IMG/VR virus record: IMGVR_UViG_3300047476_002078 | Location: 62,001-126,000 of that record | Reading direction: 5' to 3' (one strand) | Length of the DNA stretch: 64,000 nt | Shown: in pieces, positions 8,709 to 59,297 of the stretch | Layout: each line of letters begins with the position of its first letter | Position numbering within the stretch: the stretch's first letter is position 1 | Program-made: the position numbers and the translations under genes | Notes under the pieces: model-generated | What the model was told of the DNA's origin: nothing | What the model saw: the letters and a program-made list of their open reading frames with translations, nothing else | Databases searched by the model: none

Positions 8709-8795
8709 TGGTGGCTCTGACCAGACTCGAACTGGTACGCCCTTACGGACACTCGATTTTAAATCGAGGTTGTCTACCGATTCCAACACAGAGCC
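8709..8795 (-). tRNA. tRNA-Leu(UAA)
   Basis: GGCTCTG/CAGAGCC acceptor stem, anticodon loop TTTAAAA, long variable arm, GTTCGAG T-loop, encoded CCA. Confidence 0.93.
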
Positions 8796-8819
8796 AATTC
8801 ACGACTATAATAAATATGA

Positions 8820-8896
8820 TGGTGGGACTGGCAGGACTTGAACCTGCAACCCTCCGGTTATGAGCCGGACGCTCTGACCAATTGAACTACAATCCC
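8820..8896 (-). tRNA. tRNA with CAU anticodon (probably Ile2/lysidine type, elongator Met not excluded)
   Basis: GGGATTG/CAGTCCC acceptor stem, CCGG-CTCATAA-CCGG anticodon arm, GTTCAAG, encoded CCA. Confidence 0.9.
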
Positions 8897-10170: not shown

Positions 10171-10245
10171 AGGGGTATCGACAAGTGGTAAGTCAGCAGA
10201 TTTTGATTCTGCCATACGCAGGTTCGACCCCTGCTACCCCTACCA
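10171..10245 (+). tRNA. tRNA-Gln(UUG)
   Basis: AGGGGTA/TACCCCT acceptor stem, GCAGA-TTTTGAT-TCTGC anticodon arm, GGTTCGA, encoded CCA. Confidence 0.92.
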
Positions 10246-14746: not shown

Positions 14747-15610
14747 TTAAAGATATAAATGTTCAAGACTTACCTCTTGAACCATTCCTTTAAAAAAGTG
14801 CTCGATAACTTTAACTGTCCAACCGTTACCAATCATTTTAAAACATTGAGTGTCTGAAACATTCATAACAATCTCTTCTGGGATTGTTTGAAGTTTCTTA
14901 CACTCACTAACCGTCAACTTTCTAATTTTCTTTCTAAGTTCCTTTAACGGTAAACTCTGAGCTTCTTCTTTAGTTCCTTTGAACACTGAAGGCAAAGAAC
15001 CTCCTCCACTATTTGCTCTCAAAGTAGGACTTTTTGTATCAAAAACTCTGCATTTATTTTCATTAAATCCGCCGTAGATATTATGAACGAGAATTTCGCC
15101 AGAGGGTAAAACGTCTTTAAGTGTAATATTTTCTGGTGTGATAAGTCCGAAAGGGATGTTTGTCCAATAAAGTCTATTTCTACTTTGAGCGGATAATACT
15201 TCCGAATTAATTTTAATAGGCTTAACTCCCATATATTGAGTGATAATATCTTCAAATTCTTTTTTCATGACCACATTTTCGAGAAGAAACCACTTAGGTT
15301 TAACAGCCTCTAATAAACGAACATAGTCAAAAAAGAGCTTACTTTGAGGGTCTTTAAAGTTTAATTGTTTACCTGCTAAAGAAAATCCAGTACAAGGTGA
15401 GCCTCCAATTAATAAATCAATTTTCGGTAACTTAGATGTATCAATTTTTGACACATCTCCTAAATGAATCATATTTGGAAAATTCTCGGAACTAACTTTT
15501 ATTGCGTGAGGGTCAATCTCAGAGGCGTAGTAGTTATCAACCTTTATATTCAAATTTTTTAGAGCGATCTGTCCACAACTCATTCCATCGAAAAGACTCA
15601 ACACGTTCAT
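14747..15610 (-). CDS. dcm: DNA (cytosine-5)-methyltransferase
   Basis: LSLFDGMSCG (motif I), GGSPC (IV), ENV (VI), QSRNRLYW (VIII), IGNGWTV (X). Confidence 0.93.
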   Translation of the reverse strand: MNVLSLFDGMSCGQIALKNLNIKVDNYYASEIDPHAIKVSSENFPNMIHLGDVSKIDTSKLPKIDLLIGGSPCTGFSLAGKQLNFKDPQSKLFFDYVRLLEAVKPKWFLLENVVMKKEFEDIITQYMGVKPIKINSEVLSAQSRNRLYWTNIPFGLITPENITLKDVLPSGEILVHNIYGGFNENKCRVFDTKSPTLRANSGGGSLPSVFKGTKEEAQSLPLKELRKKIRKLTVSECKKLQTIPEEIVMNVSDTQCFKMIGNGWTVKVIEHFFKGMVQEVSLEHLYL

Positions 15611-18819: not shown

Positions 18820-19758
18820 ATGAACGTGCTGTCACTATTCGATGGAATATCCTGTGGGCAAATAGCTCTTAACAGAGCAAAAATTAAATATAAAAATTAT
18901 TTTGCTTCTGAAATTGATAAAAACGCTATTAATGTTACTCAGCACAACTACCCAGACACTATTCAGTTGGGGGATGTGACTAAAATTAATTTTAAATCTT
19001 TGCCAAAAATACATCTTTTGATAGGGGGTTCTCCATGTCAAGGATTCAGCATAAGTGGAAAACAACTCGCTTTCAATGACCCTCGAAGTAAACTATTTTT
19101 TGAATTTATAAAGGCTATAAAAGAACTACAGCCGAAATATTTTTTTCTTGAAAATGTTAAAATGAAAAAAGAATATGAAAATATCATAACAGAATTTTTA
19201 GGTGTAAATCCGATAGAAATAAATTCTGCCTTGGTTTCTGCTCAAAATAGAAAAAGACTTTATTGGACTAATATTCCAAACATAACTCAGCCACAAGACA
19301 AACACATTTTTCTTCGTGATATTTTAGAAAAAGATGTAACCGATAACCTATTCGCCATTCCTGATAAATATTGGAAAGGGACTAATATCGAAAATTATAT
19401 AGCTCAATCAGAAAAACCTGTAGCTTTAACTGAAAGAAGAACAGAAGAAGCAAAAAGAATTAGGAAAGAATATCAGAAAAAATATGGAAGAGACTTTTGC
19501 CCTCGAAGAGGAAAAGAATTAGTAGTCAGAAAAGACGGTAAAATGAATTGTTTGACTTCGACTTATTCAATAAAAGAACACACAGTCATTGATGAAAAAG
19601 GTTTTTACAGAAAACTTACTCCAATAGAATGTGAAAGACTACAAACAGTACCAGATAATTATACAAAAATTTTGTCTAATTCACAAAGATACAAAGCCCT
19701 TGGAAATGGTTGGACGGTAGATGTAATTGCTCACATTTTTAAAGGTATAGAAACATGA
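18820..19758 (+). CDS. dcm: DNA (cytosine-5)-methyltransferase
   Basis: LSLFDGISCG, GGSPCQGFS, ENV, QNRKRLYW, LGNGWTV. Confidence 0.93.
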   Translation: MNVLSLFDGISCGQIALNRAKIKYKNYFASEIDKNAINVTQHNYPDTIQLGDVTKINFKSLPKIHLLIGGSPCQGFSISGKQLAFNDPRSKLFFEFIKAIKELQPKYFFLENVKMKKEYENIITEFLGVNPIEINSALVSAQNRKRLYWTNIPNITQPQDKHIFLRDILEKDVTDNLFAIPDKYWKGTNIENYIAQSEKPVALTERRTEEAKRIRKEYQKKYGRDFCPRRGKELVVRKDGKMNCLTSTYSIKEHTVIDEKGFYRKLTPIECERLQTVPDNYTKILSNSQRYKALGNGWTVDVIAHIFKGIET

Positions 19759-20834
19759 ACATTCTTTCTTTATTTGATGGAATGTCTTGTGGGCAGATCG
19801 CTCTTAATAGATTGGGAATCAAATACGAAAACTATTTTGCTTCTGAAATTGATATTTACGCAATTAAAGTCACTCAACATAATTATCCAAAAACAATTCA
19901 GCTTGGCGACATCAATAATTGGAGAAATTGGAACATAGATTTTTCAACTATCGGATTAGTTACAGGTGGATTCCCCTGTCAAGCATGGTCTACGGCAGGA
20001 AAGCAATTAGGTGATAAAGACGAGAGAGGAAAACTATTTTGGGTGATGCTAGAAATTATCAAGCATATAAAAAGTTTGAATCCAAATGTCATTTTTCTAC
20101 TTGAAAATGTAAAGATGAAAAAAGACTTTGAAGAATACATAACATTTCATACAGAGCAAGCTCTCGGTAAAGTTGAAAAATATCTCATAAATTCTGCTCT
20201 GGTTTCAGCACAGACTCGTTGGAGATATTATTGGACAAACATTCCAAACGTGACTCAGCCGAAAGACAAGGGAATTACTTGGGGAGATGTTCGAGAACAT
20301 AATGTGGAAGCTGACAAATATTACTACACGGAAAAAGCATTACAGTGGTTAGCGAAAGAGTCACGCAAAAAAAATAAAACTCTCAAAGTTCACACAGATG
20401 ACGAAAAAATGCAAATGCTTGAGGCAAGCCATCACAAGAAATACTCAGCACAGCGTTTCTTTGGCATTGTAGAATCAGCGGAACAGGCTGTAGGAGCGAT
20501 TCGTGGGCGTTACCTAGTCAATGGTAAGAGACAAGATGGAGAACAGCTTACGGCAGGTTTAACGACGCAGTATATTGAGTTTCGATATGATGGTAAAACT
20601 AATACTCTATTTACGGTATCGAAAGACAATGTGGTAGTGCCGTTTACTTTGCCAGACCGAGTGCCTGCTTCGGAATTTTTGTTTCGCTACATTACTCCGG
20701 TTGAATGTGAAAGATTACAGACTGTGCCAGATCAATACTCTAGCGTTGTTAGTGATTCTCAGCGTTATAAGATGTTGGGTAATGGTTGGACTGTCGATGT
20801 GATATGCCATATTCTTAGTCATGCCAATTTCTAA
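19755..20834 (+). CDS. dcm: DNA (cytosine-5)-methyltransferase
   Basis: LSLFDGMSCG, GGFPCQAWS, ENV, QTRWRYYW, LGNGWTV. Confidence 0.92.
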   Translation: MNILSLFDGMSCGQIALNRLGIKYENYFASEIDIYAIKVTQHNYPKTIQLGDINNWRNWNIDFSTIGLVTGGFPCQAWSTAGKQLGDKDERGKLFWVMLEIIKHIKSLNPNVIFLLENVKMKKDFEEYITFHTEQALGKVEKYLINSALVSAQTRWRYYWTNIPNVTQPKDKGITWGDVREHNVEADKYYYTEKALQWLAKESRKKNKTLKVHTDDEKMQMLEASHHKKYSAQRFFGIVESAEQAVGAIRGRYLVNGKRQDGEQLTAGLTTQYIEFRYDGKTNTLFTVSKDNVVVPFTLPDRVPASEFLFRYITPVECERLQTVPDQYSSVVSDSQRYKMLGNGWTVDVICHILSHANF

Positions 20835-24620: not shown

Positions 24621-24902
24621 GATTTTAAATGGAGGGGGATTTATTCTCCCTCCTCATTTTGTGGGTTTTTATGCAATTACAAGCTACGGGTGCAATTTTA
24701 AGTTATTCCATTGGATTTGTTCTTATGTACACTTCTTATTTTGGAGAAATTAAAAAACTCTCCGTTAATGAAGGTTTTATCGCTTCTGGATTTTTTATTT
24801 ATCTTGGATGCTATTTATTTTTTTCTTTGAAAAAATCTTAAAGTCTCTCCTTTTCTTCATAACCTTGCTAATTTGCTTATAATAAGCAGAGTTGGGGTTA
24901 TA

Positions 24903-27050
24903 ATGAAAATCGACAAGAAAACACTCTCTGTTTTACAGAAACTAGCAATTACTTATCAAGAGTATAAGAAATTGCATCCTCGTACTAAGAAGACACCCGA
25001 TGACCCTCTTTTTACTTTGGCACAAGACCCAAACAAAAAAGAGTTCAAGGTTAAGCCTAAAGATATTAAAACAGTCATGCCTTCCAAGACACCTACCAAG
25101 AGTGTTCCGCAAAAGACAGACGACCCTGTTGAAAAGTTTCGCCCAAAGCTGGCTCCAAGTGCTTATCAAAAGCAGATGGATTCAAAAGAGCTTTTGAAAA
25201 ACGCTAAGAAAATGTCTTCTGACGATATGGCATGGCATCTTCTTAATTCTAAGATTGGTATGGGTTTTGAGAGTGGGGAACTTCGAGATCAAATGAAGAG
25301 TCATTTTGGTATTGCCAATATGTATGCCATGATGATTTTAAATCCAAATATATCAAAAGAAAGCCGAGACAATATTGCTTCATGGTTGCTCGATAAAGCC
25401 GGAGTATATTTTGTTTCCAGTAAATCTCTTAAAAGATTTCTCGAAGGTTGTGCGAATAAAGGCATTATCTCAAAAGAGATTTGGGAAGAAGAAGCCAATG
25501 GGGATAGTCAGCGTAAGGAAGAGGATGAGATTGCTCAAAATTACACCGCTGACCAACTTAAAAAACTTCCTGCTAAAAAGATTCAAGAGAATTGGAATGA
25601 GATTTGTCAAAACGAAAATCTTCCGACTTCCATGATTCAAAAGATGTTGGGTGATAAGGATGTGAAGAAAGCCCTTGAGTTCATGAAAAAGGGCTACATA
25701 GAAGATACAGGAGCCATGTCTGGTAAGATTGGTGAGCGTAAAAATAAAATTGGTAAAGCGTTAAAAATTCTTTCTCATAAAAATGTTCCTTTTGAAGCGT
25801 TACAAGAAGTGTTTGTACCTTCTCTTAAAAAACATCTTTCAACAAATAACTACAAGGCTTACGAAGTCGCTGAATACCTTGCGAGTCATCCTGACATAAA
25901 CAAGCCAGAGAACAGTGAGCTAAAAAAGTTAGTGCTTCAGGCTTATAAGACTCAGCTTAAATACTACAAAGACGACCCAGAATATGTGGAAGACCCTTAC
26001 AAGTCTCAACGTAACTTTGATGAGCTAAAGCACCCTTCCGCTCCCCCTGCTAACTTAAAGCTGTCGAAGGAAGAGTTCTTAGCAATTTGGAAGATTAGAG
26101 ATGAAGGTCCATATAAGTCTCAAAATGAAAGATGGTTTGAGCATCCTGATATGCCAGATGAGATTATCAAAGAGAGTTTGACTAAAAAAGATAATAAAGT
26201 AAAAGACCCTCTTGATAAATATCTTAGTGACTATTCGGAAGTTCGGAAACTCGCTTTTCATCAAGCTCGAAAAAGAAATCTCTTATCAGATGACGACTTA
26301 ATCAAAACTGTAAAAGCTAATTTGAATCTGCATGGCAATGACAATGAACTTATGAAAAAGTTCGCTGAACAAGCTTACACTTATGGAAAAAGCACTAATG
26401 ATATACCTCGTTATATTTCTAAGGGAAGTGATGAGGAACGCAAAGCTGTAGAAGAACAGATGAAAAAGTCAGCTTTCCATGAAGAGTTTGATTTTGAAGT
26501 CTCCGCAGTTTACAACATTGATAAAGAGCCACACAAAGATTTCGCAAAAACTTCTAAGAAACTTGGAAATGTAATGGAAGGTGTTTACCATGGTACAAGC
26601 TATGCAAACGCCGCTGGGATTCTTTCAGATGGGGTTAGAGTTGATACCGAAGAAAGAACAGGTTCTATGTTCGGTAGGGGTTTTTATCTAGCTTCTGCTT
26701 CTTCTAAAGCTGCCCAATATGCTGGAGAAAAATTTAGTCAGCATGATGGAGATGGGGTAGTCTTTATGCTGAATGTCGCTCTTGGTAAATCCAAAGAAAT
26801 GAAATATGGCAGACCCGAAGGAGATAATCTAAAATATCGTATGTTGAGTCCGGAAGAAAAACAAATGATTGAGGATTACAAAAAGAAAACAGGCAAAGAC
26901 CTTGATGATAAGTGGCACTACGACCATGACTCTGTAACTGCTAAGGCAGGGCAGGCTTTAGATTATGATGAGTTTGTGGTGAAAGACCCTTCTCAGCTTC
27001 AGATTAAAAAGATTGTTATTGTGAAGAAGACACCAAAGGCAAAAGTATGA
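24903..27050 (+). CDS. large protein with C-terminal PARP-type (H-Y-E) ADP-ribosyltransferase domain, leader-bearing
   Basis: YHGT...GSMFGRGFYLA...SKAAQY...VALGK...HDSV...YDEFVV parallels the PARP1 catalytic motifs. N-terminal leader plus YQEYKKLHP module. Confidence 0.85.
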   Translation: MKIDKKTLSVLQKLAITYQEYKKLHPRTKKTPDDPLFTLAQDPNKKEFKVKPKDIKTVMPSKTPTKSVPQKTDDPVEKFRPKLAPSAYQKQMDSKELLKNAKKMSSDDMAWHLLNSKIGMGFESGELRDQMKSHFGIANMYAMMILNPNISKESRDNIASWLLDKAGVYFVSSKSLKRFLEGCANKGIISKEIWEEEANGDSQRKEEDEIAQNYTADQLKKLPAKKIQENWNEICQNENLPTSMIQKMLGDKDVKKALEFMKKGYIEDTGAMSGKIGERKNKIGKALKILSHKNVPFEALQEVFVPSLKKHLSTNNYKAYEVAEYLASHPDINKPENSELKKLVLQAYKTQLKYYKDDPEYVEDPYKSQRNFDELKHPSAPPANLKLSKEEFLAIWKIRDEGPYKSQNERWFEHPDMPDEIIKESLTKKDNKVKDPLDKYLSDYSEVRKLAFHQARKRNLLSDDDLIKTVKANLNLHGNDNELMKKFAEQAYTYGKSTNDIPRYISKGSDEERKAVEEQMKKSAFHEEFDFEVSAVYNIDKEPHKDFAKTSKKLGNVMEGVYHGTSYANAAGILSDGVRVDTEERTGSMFGRGFYLASASSKAAQYAGEKFSQHDGDGVVFMLNVALGKSKEMKYGRPEGDNLKYRMLSPEEKQMIEDYKKKTGKDLDDKWHYDHDSVTAKAGQALDYDEFVVKDPSQLQIKKIVIVKKTPKAKV

Positions 27051-27268
27051 ACCAAGCCGAAATAGATCGCCAAACTATTGAATTTATTGTCAATCAGACA
27101 CCCTCTGAAGAAGAGGCGAGGCAACGTCTGGATAAGTTACAAGTTTCTTTGAAAAAAGATTATTACGAATTCTTAGTGGAAGAAGCGATTAAGAATAAAT
27201 TCCTTATAATTAATAAAACTAAGGAAATTCAAGCGAAGATATTAAATTTAGAATCAAAGTTAAAATAG
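27047..27268 (+). CDS. small hypothetical protein coupled to the PARP gene
   Basis: ATGA overlap with the PARP stop codon. Confidence 0.6.
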   Translation: MNQAEIDRQTIEFIVNQTPSEEEARQRLDKLQVSLKKDYYEFLVEEAIKNKFLIINKTKEIQAKILNLESKLK

Positions 27269-27275
27269 GGATTGT

Positions 27276-27905
27276 ATGAAAAAAATAGTTTCAAGCCTTC
27301 ATAAAATTGCGTCAGATTTAGAAAAAACTGCTTTAGATTACAATGAGTATAAAAAGCTACACCCGAACACAAAAAAGACACCTTCTGACCCGATGTTTAA
27401 AGAAAATAAACCTCAACAGGAGAGTCAGGCTCCCAAACAACAAGCTCCAAATCAACAACCAAAATCTGAGCCTAAACAAGAATCTGCTCCTAAAGTAAAG
27501 AAAACTGTTAGTGATTTTACGGATGCTGAATTAGATGAAATTGGTTTCATGCCGTCTTATAGAAAAAGTTTAAGTGATAAAGAAGTTTTGGAAGAATATA
27601 ACGCTAAAAATAAAGTTGATGAGCTTGTAAAATCTAAAAAATTGAACCTTTCTGATTATCCTGATACTGCCTTTACCTCTATTCTGCAAGATTACAAAGA
27701 AAAACAAAATAAAGGAAAATTAAGTGATGATGATTTTGAACCAGAAAACTTTTATACCGCAGTTAGAAAACATTTAAGCGATAAAGAAGTTACTCCTAAA
27801 ACTGTGAGGGAAGCGATTCGTGTTTATCACCCAGATGCAAAACTCACAAATGACCAAATAAGTTCTGTAATGAATATGTATGAAAAAAAACAAGGTTGGG
27901 GCTAA
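27276..27905 (+). CDS. hypothetical protein, leader plus YNEYKKLHP module, Gln/Pro/Lys linker
   Basis: MKKIVSSLHKIASDLEKTA-LDYNEYKKLHPNTKKTPSDPMF. Confidence 0.75.
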   Translation: MKKIVSSLHKIASDLEKTALDYNEYKKLHPNTKKTPSDPMFKENKPQQESQAPKQQAPNQQPKSEPKQESAPKVKKTVSDFTDAELDEIGFMPSYRKSLSDKEVLEEYNAKNKVDELVKSKKLNLSDYPDTAFTSILQDYKEKQNKGKLSDDDFEPENFYTAVRKHLSDKEVTPKTVREAIRVYHPDAKLTNDQISSVMNMYEKKQGWG

Positions 27906-27906
27906 T

Positions 27907-28299
27907 ATGAAATTAAAAGAACAGATACAAAATTTAGAGAAAAAAATCGCTTCTAAAGCGGATGCTGCTGATATTTTTGATGAGTTTGTTAAAAACATCA
28001 TGGAGCCTCATAGAAAGAAATTTATCGAAGATCAAAACTCACCTTGGAACAAAAGCAGAGAAACTGAAGCTTCTTTAAAAGAAAAAGCAAAGTTGATTGA
28101 AGAAAGAATGAAAGAAGGTAGAGGTTTCCGTGAGGTTTGTGATGATAAAGATATTTATTTAGGAAGCGTTGATTCTAACTTCATTTATGATAAATATGTT
28201 CTAAAATCTTGGAAAGGCTCTTTTGAAGATTGGAAAGATAAAGAGATGCGTTTAGACGCTAGAAGATTTTTTGTAGATTTAAAATTAATTAAGTGGTGA
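27907..28299 (+). CDS. hypothetical protein, leader-bearing family
   Basis: MKLKEQIQNLEKKIASKA. Confidence 0.65.
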   Translation: MKLKEQIQNLEKKIASKADAADIFDEFVKNIMEPHRKKFIEDQNSPWNKSRETEASLKEKAKLIEERMKEGRGFREVCDDKDIYLGSVDSNFIYDKYVLKSWKGSFEDWKDKEMRLDARRFFVDLKLIKW

Positions 28300-28304
28300 T
28301 AGAT

Positions 28305-29411
28305 ATGAAAGATTTAATTCCGGGCGGAAAGTCAGATAAAAAACCAGACTCAGCTTTTGATTCCAAGCAACTTCAAAAAGGTATCAAGGTTGAGCGAGAG
28401 CACACAAAAAACAAACAGCTTGCTAAAGAGATTGCAAAAGATCATTTATCTGAATTTTCTGATTACTATGATAGATTAGAAAAGATGGAAAAGTCAGCAC
28501 ATTCAAAAGTTCTCTTAAAAAAAATAAAAGAGCTTGCACACAAAATTTCTGCTTCTAACGAGCATCCTATAACTAAAGGCTTAGTGCTGTCCTTTTTTGC
28601 TACTAACATCGAGATTGGTGTTATTGACGAAGCTACGAAAAAACCTATCACTATTGCGAAAATTAATAAATCGTTTAAGAAAGATAGTCAAAGTGAAGTT
28701 ATCGAACTAGCTAAAGAGATATTTAATAATCTCGATGCTTCTGGTTACACTAAAGGCATGGACTTCAAGGCTCAACCTTACTACCGAGAATTAAATCAGG
28801 CTTATCTTAATTTCAAGAAAAGATTGTCGGAACTTTCAGAGAACCAATTAGAAAAGATGGGACTCGGTAAGCATCCATATAAATATTTGGGAGCTATGGA
28901 GTCACCTTCAAAAGAACTTCAAGAGCAAAATCCAGAAGCCTATAACAACGCACTAAGAAATTTCCCAAGATTTGATGCAGGTGGAATTGGAAGCTGTGCT
29001 AGATGTTACAACGCAATTACTATTCACCATATTATTAAATCTAGTGATGGAAAGGTATTTCCTTTAGGTAGTGAGTGCGTTTGGACATTGAATGATAATA
29101 AAATCGAGTCTGAAGTTAAAAAAGAAAAGACAAAGATTGAGAAAAGTAAAAGAGACGTAAGAAATAAGGCAAAATTATCTGATCTGGAAGACATTATAAA
29201 CAATCCTGAGTTAATCAAGAAAATGAAAAGTATGTCATACAAAATGCCAGCCGCTTTCAGTAAATGGGATGAGGGCAAAAGGCAATGGTACTTAAATACA
29301 ATTGTTGGAGATGGGACTTACTACGATTATGTTTTACACATGATTAAAATTTCTGGCACTTCAGGAAAACAAAGAATACTAAAAGAAGTTAAAAAAGATT
29401 TGGGGTTATAA
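28305..29411 (+). CDS. DUF5661-like N-terminal domain protein with an internal leader-like segment
   Basis: KGIKVEREHT...AKEIAKDHLSE...YYDRLEKME, then KKIKELAHKISAS, and a CARC...GSEC zinc motif. Confidence 0.6.
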   Translation: MKDLIPGGKSDKKPDSAFDSKQLQKGIKVEREHTKNKQLAKEIAKDHLSEFSDYYDRLEKMEKSAHSKVLLKKIKELAHKISASNEHPITKGLVLSFFATNIEIGVIDEATKKPITIAKINKSFKKDSQSEVIELAKEIFNNLDASGYTKGMDFKAQPYYRELNQAYLNFKKRLSELSENQLEKMGLGKHPYKYLGAMESPSKELQEQNPEAYNNALRNFPRFDAGGIGSCARCYNAITIHHIIKSSDGKVFPLGSECVWTLNDNKIESEVKKEKTKIEKSKRDVRNKAKLSDLEDIINNPELIKKMKSMSYKMPAAFSKWDEGKRQWYLNTIVGDGTYYDYVLHMIKISGTSGKQRILKEVKKDLGL

Positions 29412-33299: not shown

Positions 33300-33376
33300 T
33301 GGCGACCGAGGAGGGACTCGAACCCCCAACCGCTGCCTTAGAAAGACAATGCTCTATCCGGTTGAGCTACTCGGTC
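33300..33376 (-). tRNA. tRNA-Arg(UCU)
   Basis: GACCGAG/CTCGGTC acceptor stem, loop TTTCTAA, GGTTCGAG, encoded CCA. Confidence 0.9.
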
Positions 33377-33410: not shown

Positions 33411-34232
33411 CTATTTAAAATTTAATTGAACCTGTGAATCTGTCCCATCTTCATGAGCAAAAGTAAAATAATGCTGTTGATGCCATTTTGATTTGATTGC
33501 ATTTGACAGTCTCATTTTAACTTTCCCTGCTTCATCAAAATCAGTAAAAATGTTTTTAAGATGGCTTCCTGCTACGTGCCCTGTGCCCTTCATCTCATCT
33601 CCTGCATATTGTTCCCAGAGAGGCTTTAAATGATTATGCCCTGCGGTAGAGTGGATAACGGAATGTTGTCCATATTTTTTACCAATTGCTTCCAAGTCTT
33701 TTGGAGAAACTTTATTTGTGTGGTGAACCATGAAAACATTTTCATCATTCCCCATGAAGTGCCCTGTACCTCTGTGAAAAACAACGCCCATTTTCTGAAG
33801 TTCTTGCATGAGTTGTTGTGTACGTTTTTTATTTTCTTCGGAATCTGTTTTTTGACCATGTGGGTTTTCTGCGGTTAGTACCGTAAATGAACCGTGGTTT
33901 AAATGATGCTTGAGAAATTTTTTATCTATTGGGGCTGCTCCGGAAATAAAAGGTCGTGCGTTTTCGGAAGTCTTTACTTGCGTTCTTGTTCTCAATTCTT
34001 TGAACTTATCAAAGTCTAATTTTGTATCGGGATGATTCTGCTTAAACATATCGTAAGCAGTATTAATGCTCTCGTCTGATTTAGTCTGTGGTTTATTTTG
34101 AGAAGGTTGAGCAAAAAGAGGGTCATTTGGTCTTTTTTTAGTCAAAGGGTGTAACTTCTTATAGTCTTCATAAGTTATTTTGGCTTTTTTAAGCTTATTT
34201 TCAAGTTCAGAGATTAAGTCAGATACTTTCAT
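33411..34232 (-). CDS. leader plus YEDYKKLHP module protein with a DUF3293-like C-terminal domain
   Basis: MKVSDLISELENKLKKAK-ITYEDYKKLHPLTKKRPNDPLF, and FTVLTAENP...EENKKRTQQL...GTGHF...ENVFMV. Confidence 0.65.
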   Translation of the reverse strand: MKVSDLISELENKLKKAKITYEDYKKLHPLTKKRPNDPLFAQPSQNKPQTKSDESINTAYDMFKQNHPDTKLDFDKFKELRTRTQVKTSENARPFISGAAPIDKKFLKHHLNHGSFTVLTAENPHGQKTDSEENKKRTQQLMQELQKMGVVFHRGTGHFMGNDENVFMVHHTNKVSPKDLEAIGKKYGQHSVIHSTAGHNHLKPLWEQYAGDEMKGTGHVAGSHLKNIFTDFDEAGKVKMRLSNAIKSKWHQQHYFTFAHEDGTDSQVQLNFK

Positions 34233-58679: not shown

Positions 58680-59297
58680 ATGAAAAAAATATTTAAAGCA
58701 ATATCAAAATTAGAGAAGAAAATTTCTGGTCTTTCTTATCAAGAGTATAAGAAAAAATATCCAAAGACTAAGAAACAGCAAAATGACCTTCTATTTACTG
58801 AACCTTCTAAACTTGTTCGTAATCCAAACACTGACGGTTTAAAAGAATTGATTACTCAAGACTACGCAGACAGATTGGATAAAAAACCTATTAAGGAAAA
58901 AATACAACCCACAATAAATCCAATTTTTAAAAATGTTGATGTGGAAGAAGAACACGATGAAATTTACCGTGCTGCCAGTGAACTTGGGGTTAATGGAGAA
59001 GAATTAAAAAGCAAAATTAAGTCTGCAAAACCTCAACGCCTATCTAATGAAATTTGGAGTCAATTACAGAACACAGATAGTTGGGAAATTTCAAGTAAAG
59101 AAGACGTTGATAAACTTTCCAAAAAATATAACAGAGACGCTGATAGTATTAGAGACGCTTTTAAAAATGGTAAAGCCTTGCCTACTCCCATGATTGCTAA
59201 AAAAGGCAATGAATATGTTTTAATCGGTGGGAACACTCGATTAATGGTATCTAAAGAAATGGGAATAAAGCCTTTTGTTGTAATAGCCGAAGTCTAA
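58680..59297 (+). CDS. leader plus YQEYKKKYP module protein with a ParB/Srx-like C-terminal domain
   Basis: MKKIFKAISKLEKKISG-LSYQEYKKKYPKTKKQQNDLLF, and PTPMI...YVLIGGNTRL. Confidence 0.7.
   Translation: MKKIFKAISKLEKKISGLSYQEYKKKYPKTKKQQNDLLFTEPSKLVRNPNTDGLKELITQDYADRLDKKPIKEKIQPTINPIFKNVDVEEEHDEIYRAASELGVNGEELKSKIKSAKPQRLSNEIWSQLQNTDSWEISSKEDVDKLSKKYNRDADSIRDAFKNGKALPTPMIAKKGNEYVLIGGNTRLMVSKEMGIKPFVVIAEV

Follow-up and report, generated by a model that had tools for sequence, protein, structure and literature searches.

A PARP-clade ADP-ribosyltransferase of a huge phage carries a leader peptide that recurs on unrelated phage proteins

What would a huge phage do with a PARP-like enzyme, and where might the short peptide at the enzyme's N-terminus direct it? 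We address these questions for a gene in a 64,000-nucleotide stretch of viral DNA, hereafter the window, which spans positions 62001-126000 of the 355,874-bp contig IMGVR_UViG_3300047476_002078. The gene occupies 24903..27050 (+) of the window, beginning at contig position 86903, and encodes a PARP-family ADP-ribosyltransferase (ART) of 715 amino acids plus stop. An earlier reading of this DNA from its letters and open reading frames (ORFs), hereafter the original prediction, took the product for a phage-encoded, PARP1-like enzyme with a leader, delivered by the virion as a functional analogue of T4 Alt. On balance we favour a reading in which the protein is a predicted active H-Y-E ART effector and its leader a putative address tag bound for the virion. 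The frame is open from a TTG (24873..27050, +) without internal stop; we took the ATG at 24903 as the start because the metagenomic orthologues P0001 and P0002 begin MKIDKK. Orthologues P0001-P0005 align over the full length with 95-46% identity.

The catalytic domain identifies the family. Residues 512-707 (26436..27023, +) match the PARP catalytic profile PF00644 at E 4.3e-23, scoring 82.3 bits against a gathering cut-off of 26.7 and covering profile positions 3-197 of 199. With phmmer, the only ARTs returned from all PDB chains at E<=1e-3 were PARP1 (8e-15), PARP2 (5e-12) and PARP3 (4e-8); judged by sequence, the resemblance to PARPs goes far beyond chance. The motifs from which the enzyme was first recognised (FEVSAVYNID, YHGT, GSMFGRGFYLA, SKAAQY, VALGK, HDSV and YDEFVV) all occur in the translation in that order, and the three positions singled out as catalytic (26589, 26685 and 26970) are the correct codons. 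His563 of the HGT motif (26589..26591, +) aligns with the histidine of PARP1 HGS, Tyr595 of GFYLA (26685..26687, +) aligns with PARP1 GIYFA, and the catalytic Glu690 lies in YDEFVV (26970..26972, +). In an alignment of 33 sequences, made up of the query and the 32 homologues found, with identities down to 23%, all three residues are invariant, as are G564, T565 and, within SKAAQY, K602 and Y606. The NAD+-site residues H563, G564, Y595, S601, K602, Y606 and E690 are invariant or nearly so, a conservation pattern that reads as that of an active transferase. Because the last 54 amino acids alone match nothing in the PDB, the placement of E690 rests on the Pfam profile, within whose match it lies, on the PARP2 alignments, which reach query residue 705, and on the family alignment.

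A structural model points the same way. The AlphaFold2 model built from the 33-sequence alignment has a mean predicted local distance difference test score (pLDDT) of 85.7 and a predicted template-modelling score of 0.78, with an alpha/beta domain at residues 500-715; it replaced an earlier run on six sequences in which the ART domain was poor (pLDDT 70). Searched with Foldseek against the PDB, the model found PARP1 and PARP2 chains only among the 50 matches listed (E 1e-10, probability 1.00). ART-only constructs superpose with template-modelling scores (TM) of 0.59-0.62, root-mean-square deviations (rmsd) of 4.4-5.2 Å and structural-alignment identities of ~20-24%, as exemplified by the PARP1 ART 8fz1_A (TM 0.62, rmsd 4.7) and PARP2 6tx3_B (TM 0.59, rmsd 4.4). 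Extending the target by the PARP1 helical domain hardly enlarges the superposed portion (TM 0.45 on 350 residues versus 0.6 on 240). Compared with predicted viral structures, the model is matched best by PARP-domain proteins from Pseudomonas phage pf16 and Aeromonas phage phiAS5, and from Bodo saltans virus and other giant viruses. The comparison with PF00644 and PARP1 that had been proposed as a check on the enzyme's identity therefore came out in its favour, and the modelled ART fold is superposable on solved PARP structures at the level of the domain. ADPrib_exo_Tox, the R-S-E family of Alt and VIP2, has no match in this protein, in which Pfam detected just one catalytic domain. The C-terminal domain is thus a PARP-clade H-Y-E ART and, as had been claimed, belongs to a clade other than that of T4 Alt, an R-S-E mono-ART.

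Beyond the catalytic domain the label 'PARP1-like' no longer holds. The phage protein shares with PARP1, PARP2 and PARP3 the Pfam family, the fold, the H-Y-E triad, SKxxxY and the second Tyr, but zinc fingers, BRCT, WGR and the PARP_reg/helical domain were not detected, and a leader and a solenoid take the place of the DNA-sensing modules; WGR (PF05406) and PARP_reg (PF02877) gave no Pfam match even at E<=1. The ART domain also differs by a family-specific, partly helical insert of ~40 residues after VALGK (aa ~633-672; 26799..26918, +), with a model helix at 650-663; the insert is missing from the short canonical PARP P0125 (alignment A4).

Whether such an enzyme would build polymer or transfer single ADP-ribose units is a separate question. 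PARP3 and PARP4 are H-Y-E enzymes that make mono-ADP-ribose only, and the triad is necessary, not sufficient, for polymer formation, which counts against taking it as proof of a polymerase. The loop between HDSV and the catalytic Glu appears much shorter than in PARP1 when the two sequences are read side by side, the tool alignments ending before the loop. Tankyrases likewise have a short segment before the catalytic Glu and yet make polymer, so this feature does not decide activity. Non-eukaryotic H-Y-E PARPs can make polymer, since the PF00644 enzymes HaPARP of Herpetosiphon aurantiacus and CdPARP of Clostridioides difficile CD160 show PARylation in vitro (PMC8120803, PMC5966428). Unlike the phage protein, these bacterial enzymes combine the PARP domain with WGR, with or without PARP_reg, and HaPARP depends on DNA; in the phage protein neither module was detected, and no PARG partner was found among the scanned window ORFs. 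We give polymer formation, as against mono transfer, slightly less than an even chance.

The N-terminal region is helical in the model, as had been anticipated, and conserved in the alignment. The protein begins with a 37-residue leader, continues through a disordered linker rich in Pro, Lys and Thr (aa 38-72; 25014..25118, +; pLDDT <50) into a conserved alpha-helical, LRV/HEAT-like solenoid of ~420 residues (aa ~75-500; 25125..26402, +; pLDDT 80-97, mostly 85-97), and ends with the insert-bearing ART domain. Near-invariant residues of the helical region in the 33 sequences include D107, D108, A110, W111, N147, K152, G167, V168, F170, V171, N294, P296 and D331. The solenoid repeats N-x-N/P motifs (LNPNISKE, QNENLPTS, HKNVPFE, DINKPEN, HPDMPDE), and because its motifs repeat, a resemblance to LRV/HEAT proteins fits; the look-alikes found in the ESM Atlas are indeed LRV/HEAT repeat proteins, at TM 0.3-0.4, and serve as leads only. 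PHROGs has no match for the protein.

The same chassis occurs with two different N-termini. Leader-bearing PARPs are 685-742 residues long, and sister PARPs of 765-825 residues have a ~200-residue N-domain in place of leader and linker, followed by the same solenoid and ART domain. An N-terminal module swapped on a constant effector chassis is what is expected of a trafficking or assembly signal. In the ESM Atlas the sister N-domain resembles ART-PolyVal/AcrIF11-type ARTs (score 0.88, an unconfirmed lead); we rejected it as an active ART-PolyVal, since alignment A9 has no conserved H/Y/E pattern and the Atlas lead stands by itself. The genome studied here encodes two PARP paralogues, both bearing the leader; the second, of 660-663 residues, lies at ~39.2 kb on the same contig (L007:9992-11983; PF00644 7e-24, 84.8 bits).

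The leader on the PARP, a further element of the original prediction, is real, and four ORFs of the window carry it. It comprises residues 1-37 (24903..25013, +), with a first helix followed by the pattern (A/L)I(T/S)YxEYKKxHPxTKKxPxDP(L/M)F, and the model places helices at residues 5-14 and 18-24 (pLDDT ~60). At least seven proteins of this genome share the leader on unrelated C-terminal parts, their genes lying at ~39, 87, 89, 96, 121, 168 and 343 kb. Besides the PARP gene, the leader ORFs of the window are 27276..27905 (+), encoding 209 residues without a Pfam family; 33411..34232 (-), starting at 34232 and encoding 273 residues with leader and DUF3293 (E 3e-12), in which an S-adenosylmethionine lyase match falls below cut-off; and the more divergent 58680..59297 (+), of 205 residues (31-65 bits with the leader hidden Markov model). 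Three more lie elsewhere on the contig, at ~39, 168 and 343 kb. Among the seven leaders, 49% of same-residue codon pairs differ in codon, which argues that selection acts on the leader peptide and not on a DNA or RNA element.

The leader is widespread in metagenomes. A profile built from nine leaders and searched against 1.84 billion representative proteins matched 95 of them at E<=1e-3 and 22 at E<=1e-10, and the leader was found on ~90 protein clusters. Nearly all of the collected set (94/98) have the core motif HPx(T/S)xK...D..F, which starts within the first 45 residues in 82/98, and their median length is 176 residues. Across the family, Pro (2.3-fold), Lys, Gln and Thr are over-represented in the 30 residues that follow the leader, and hydrophobic residues are under-represented; together, leader and Pro/Lys-rich sequence thus define a general layout of tag, flexible tether and cargo. 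Pfam, PHROGs and NCBIfam hold no model for the leader; NCBIfam returned nothing for the PARP, for four other leader proteins of this genome, for P0025 or for a small ORF that overlaps the PARP stop. A tblastn search with the leader against 50,697 isolate phage genomes gave no match at E<=1, to which the low-complexity filter may contribute, and when one genome from each of 185,579 species of bacteria and archaea was scanned with a leader pattern, 46 matches to the pattern came up, none of which was confirmed.

What the leader is attached to is heterogeneous and rich in enzymes. The cargo includes PARPs (five full-length orthologue clusters P0001-P0005, P0011, and the paralogue cluster P0014), three proteins with LPD1, a phage 'polyvalent' protein domain, and a HEWGH (HExxH) motif, one of which also matches CLCA_X, two eukaryote-type topoisomerases IB, the DUF3293 protein and one ADPrib_exo_Tox (Alt/VIP2-type) ART. 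Topoisomerase P0024 and PARP orthologue P0102 are encoded by the same 345-kb relative genome, which holds at least two further leader genes. Two other cargo candidates were set aside: in the 'SidE_PDE' protein P0093 the leader match is weak and falls on an internal repeat (ISHQDYPKLYE), and in the 'DnaJ' protein P0035 the leader sits after the DnaJ domain, probably through the merging of two genes.

Three side observations concern the leader itself. The first leader helix, (I/L)xxLExKLA, also occurs without YxEYKKxHP, at the N-terminus of a 197-residue gene product encoded before the leader gene p128 (L010:9368-9961) and at the C-terminus of the small ORF at 27047-27268; the leader may be bipartite. 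In many short leader proteins (P0028, P0042, P0057, P0087 and others) the linker is followed by a common His-rich segment, for example W.P.DH...A..H..LA.HH, and these proteins look like a distinct, unannotated cargo family. Finally, P0007, a 66-residue metagenomic protein, consists of the PARP leader and first linker residues fused to the last ~15 PARP residues (…KIKKIVIVKKTPKAKV); it is explained either by a genuine in-frame deletion that removed the entire enzyme or by an assembly error.

The leader may outweigh the enzyme in value. It is a short, portable peptide found in viral sequences only, and it ties ~90 protein families that otherwise lack annotation into one functional set; should it be a signal for packaging or localisation, a role would be assigned at once to many 'hypothetical' proteins of huge phages, and it could serve as a tool to load foreign cargo into phage particles. 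The PARP family, with its invariant active site, conserved partner ORF and defined domain structure, offers a tractable case.

The candidate partner is a small ORF of 73 residues (27047..27268, +) whose start overlaps the PARP stop in an ATGA. Homologues of 69-131 residues lie directly 3' of the PARP gene in seven loci including the window, overlapping the stop codon in most, whether or not the PARP bears a leader; the second paralogue of this genome is without one. The six homologues from other loci (L001:8579-8809, L002:11010-11219, L005:12058-12273, L012:12121-12348, L018:11319-11543 and L017:11454-11849) are 23-34% identical, share the motif I.(F/Y/L)IVN....EEAR and include the leaderless PARP subfamily. 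In P0039, a complete leader and 270 additional residues are joined to a homologue of the small ORF. This fusion and the occurrence with leaderless PARPs indicate that the pairing of PARP and small ORF is older than the leader. The tight coupling to the PARP suggests the small ORF as a candidate regulator, inhibitor/immunity factor or chaperone of the enzyme.

Where, then, would the leader take its cargo? The leader proteins probably share one destination. The leader would act as a modular docking peptide on a flexible tether, sending a set of phage enzymes to a common place, most likely the assembling virion, from which the cargo would pass into the next host together with the DNA, in the manner of T4 Alt and the internal proteins of T4. 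Once there, the PARP would serve as a host-takeover or counter-defence effector, using NAD+ to ADP-ribosylate host macromolecules, with the solenoid binding a target or a regulator. Because the WGR and regulatory modules that sense DNA breaks are missing, control must come from elsewhere, and the solenoid and/or the translationally coupled small ORF are the candidates. Taken by itself, packaging in the virion, argued from the leader, from analogy and from genomic context, is a tentative proposal that we hold at not quite an even chance.

The analogy is to T4, whose Alt and internal proteins are packaged in the head and injected, and whose capsid-targeting signal of ~10-20 residues has a defined motif at which the prohead protease cleaves it off. 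In T4 as here, the same short N-terminal peptide stands on an ART and on several unrelated proteins of one phage (PMC9503650, PMC8120803). The leader differs in its length of ~37 residues, its unrelated sequence, the long linker that follows it and the lack of an evident cleavage motif. The cargo offers a second likeness, since polyvalent effectors for which injection from the virion is predicted typically contain LPD1 and ART domains (PMC5512222, PMC9503650). The leader set shares with polyvalent proteins an effector repertoire of ARTs, LPD1 (the leader stands on three LPD1 proteins) and HExxH metallopeptidase-like domains, with a predicted role in the earliest phase of infection (PMC5512222). 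Unlike polyvalent proteins, which join many effector domains in one giant polypeptide, the leader set consists of separate effectors with the same tag, a 'distributed' version, and this PARP does not combine two or more disparate effector domains in one chain.

Genomic context contributes as well. p128, a leader gene whose start lies 3 nt past the end of the gene before it, closes a co-directional run comprising a Baseplate_J-like gene, a 1011-aa gene, a wedge-network-like gene, the 197-aa gene and p128. In Herelleviridae, distant PARP-domain proteins (YungSlug QKE56383.1, annotated 'PARP polymerase', and LysYB1 WAB25175.1) are encoded by genes that directly precede those for the portal, the procapsid protease and the major capsid protein, and a 2022 survey takes such head-gene context as evidence of head packaging (PMC9503650). 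Several observations weigh against delivery in the virion. The surroundings of the PARP gene are accessory genes without a structural neighbour, most leader genes likewise lie among accessory, nucleotide-metabolism or replication genes rather than structural ones, and no conserved protease cleavage motif was seen after the leader. A scan of 64 window ORFs turned up no Macro, PARG, NADAR or Nudix partner, the sequence covered amounting to about a third of the genome. A sigma-70-like match at 24856-24883, upstream of the PARP gene, would suit early over late expression; the promoter and terminator scan around the gene gave 34 matches against a shuffled expectation of 37.6, which is not above chance, and expression timing therefore cannot be inferred.

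The strongest alternative takes these same observations as its starting point. The PARP could be made de novo after infection, like T4 ModA and ModB, and stay unpackaged, its leader being a short linear motif that docks cargo on some other intracellular hub, or a tag for timed degradation; possible hubs include a host machine (chaperone, protease, clamp, RNA polymerase or ribosome), the phage DNA or a compartment built by the phage. The dispersal of leader genes over the genome in mostly non-structural surroundings would suit such a hub, but the T4 alt and internal-protein genes are equally dispersed in the T4 genome, and one leader gene sits in a baseplate operon. The possible promoter of the PARP gene's own would fit too, were its match above chance. 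A Lys-rich leader on a flexible tether is what a linear binding motif would look like, and topoisomerase IB and PARP act on DNA and could work at replication sites; the LPD1 and ART cargo, for its part, fits the predicted repertoire of injected effectors (PMC5512222). We judge this alternative distinctly possible while short of probable.

The reading in which the leader sends its cargo to the virion can be carried further, to a version that we regard as rather unlikely in its full form. The leader would then be the address label of an unrecognised cargo-loading system in a clade of ~350-kb phages, loading separate enzymes that modify DNA and proteins into the capsid or onto the ejection apparatus. 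The PARP would be the first virion-delivered poly(ADP-ribose) polymerase, acting as the DNA enters, for example on host defence proteins or DNA ends, and the small ORF would be an inhibitor within the producing cell or a loading chaperone. If this were true, the loaded suite would include two PARPs, a eukaryote-type topoisomerase IB, proteins with HExxH/LPD1 and a VIP2-like ART, along with small proteins by the dozen.

A different alternative concerns the substrate. The enzyme could ADP-ribosylate nucleic acid, modifying DNA ends or bases and so capping or marking the incoming phage genome against nucleases, or damaging host DNA. PARP1-3 ADP-ribosylate DNA termini and DarT modifies bases, and the phage enzyme stands closest to the DNA-dependent PARP1/2/3 clade. 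A review covers DNA ADP-ribosylation by PARPs and DarT (PMC8883491). Topoisomerase IB is among the co-tagged cargo. Three C5-cytosine DNA methyltransferase genes of the window lie within 6 kb of sequence (14747-15610, -; 18820-19758, +; 19755-20834, +), and a relative genome (L005) has TAGT-like and other glycosyltransferases, which together point to a heavy investment in DNA modification. Against a nucleic-acid substrate, no DNA-binding module (WGR or zinc finger) was detected, and the N-domain looks like a protein-interaction solenoid. We consider this substrate improbable; it would be compatible with either delivery route and is hence not exclusive of an address tag bound for the virion. 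A degenerate or repurposed PARP fold, acting as an NAD+ glycohydrolase or as a non-catalytic binder of NAD+ or ADP-ribose, would accord with the 40-residue insert inside the ART domain, the lack of a canonical regulatory domain and the prediction of some phage ARTs as NADases (PMC9503650), but is very improbable given that the NAD+-site residues examined are invariant or nearly so in the 33 sequences.

How much of this is new? Phage PARP/PART-family ARTs, including those of 'a few jumbo phages', have been catalogued in silico by Iyer, Burroughs, Anantharaman and Aravind, who suggested polymer formation as possible and count PART among the most frequent viral ART families (PMC7824862, PMC9503650). 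Because such enzymes were already reported, what is novel lies in the architecture and the leader and not in the enzyme as such. The catalogued PARTs of Bacillus phage YungSlug, pf16 and phiAS5 resemble the protein described here in being H-Y-E PARP-clade enzymes with a bias to myoviruses, predicted to modify host macromolecules and encoded in some cases in a head-morphogenesis context. They differ in having other architectures of 870-1370 residues, next to the portal gene in Herelleviridae, and the leader was found in none of the isolate phages searched. The literature searched contained no experimental study of a phage PARP. Set against the libraries and papers searched, three elements are new: an architecture in which a solenoid, an ART insert and a coupled small ORF occur while WGR and regulatory domains do not, the presence of two paralogues in one genome and, above all, the shared leader.

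That the gene belongs to a phage, as first claimed, is clear from the 356-kb contig, which encodes elsewhere a Baseplate_J wedge protein, a protein resembling the baseplate-wedge tail-fibre network, a collagen-repeat protein of >1860 residues (a tail fibre), an SNF2 helicase and glycosyltransferases. The source is a huge, contractile-tailed (myovirus-type) phage of ~356 kb, and the contig with its phage genes rules out contamination or a eukaryotic origin. Some homologues of the PARP lie on contigs of 127, 182 and 345 kb, with orthologue contigs of 182-345 kb. The only isolate phages to match are four Herelleviridae, whose similarity (34-36% identity) is confined to the N-terminal half of the ART domain, and close isolate relatives do not exist.

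The window has a G+C content of 33% and is densely packed with small genes, mostly on the + strand. Besides the methyltransferases it encodes an IMPDH/GMP-reductase, a sugar epimerase, an SPFH protein, 2-oxoglutarate-Fe(II) oxygenases and a pyrimidine-dimer glycosylase. A SLOG-family (YAcAr/DprA-like) protein and a YqcI/YcgG protein were found among 44 window ORFs scanned; SLOG domains have been proposed to sense ligands derived from NAD+ or ADP-ribose (PMC9503650), and a functional link between the SLOG-family protein and the PARP may exist. Two genes 3' of the PARP gene, in the same gene run as the 209-residue leader protein, a 372-residue protein (28293-29411, +) has an N-terminal DUF5661 domain (E 3e-11).

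Two minor features concern RNA. The window's own PARP gene is without a start-codon hairpin, with just a non-significant palindrome, GCTTATAATAAGC, at 24874-24886. Three PARP orthologues have a stable hairpin with the start codon in its 3' arm (L002:8910-8941, L005:9979-10010 and L012:9981-10007; -12.8 to -17.3 kcal/mol, z -2.9 to -5.3), with a compensatory change in L012 relative to L002 and L005, which suggests translational control in those three orthologues. Four tRNA genes (Leu-TAA, Met-CAT, Gln-TTG and Arg-TCT) lie at 8709-8896 (-), 10171-10245 (+) and 33300-33376 (-), the Arg tRNA just past the 3' end of the leader/DUF3293 gene.

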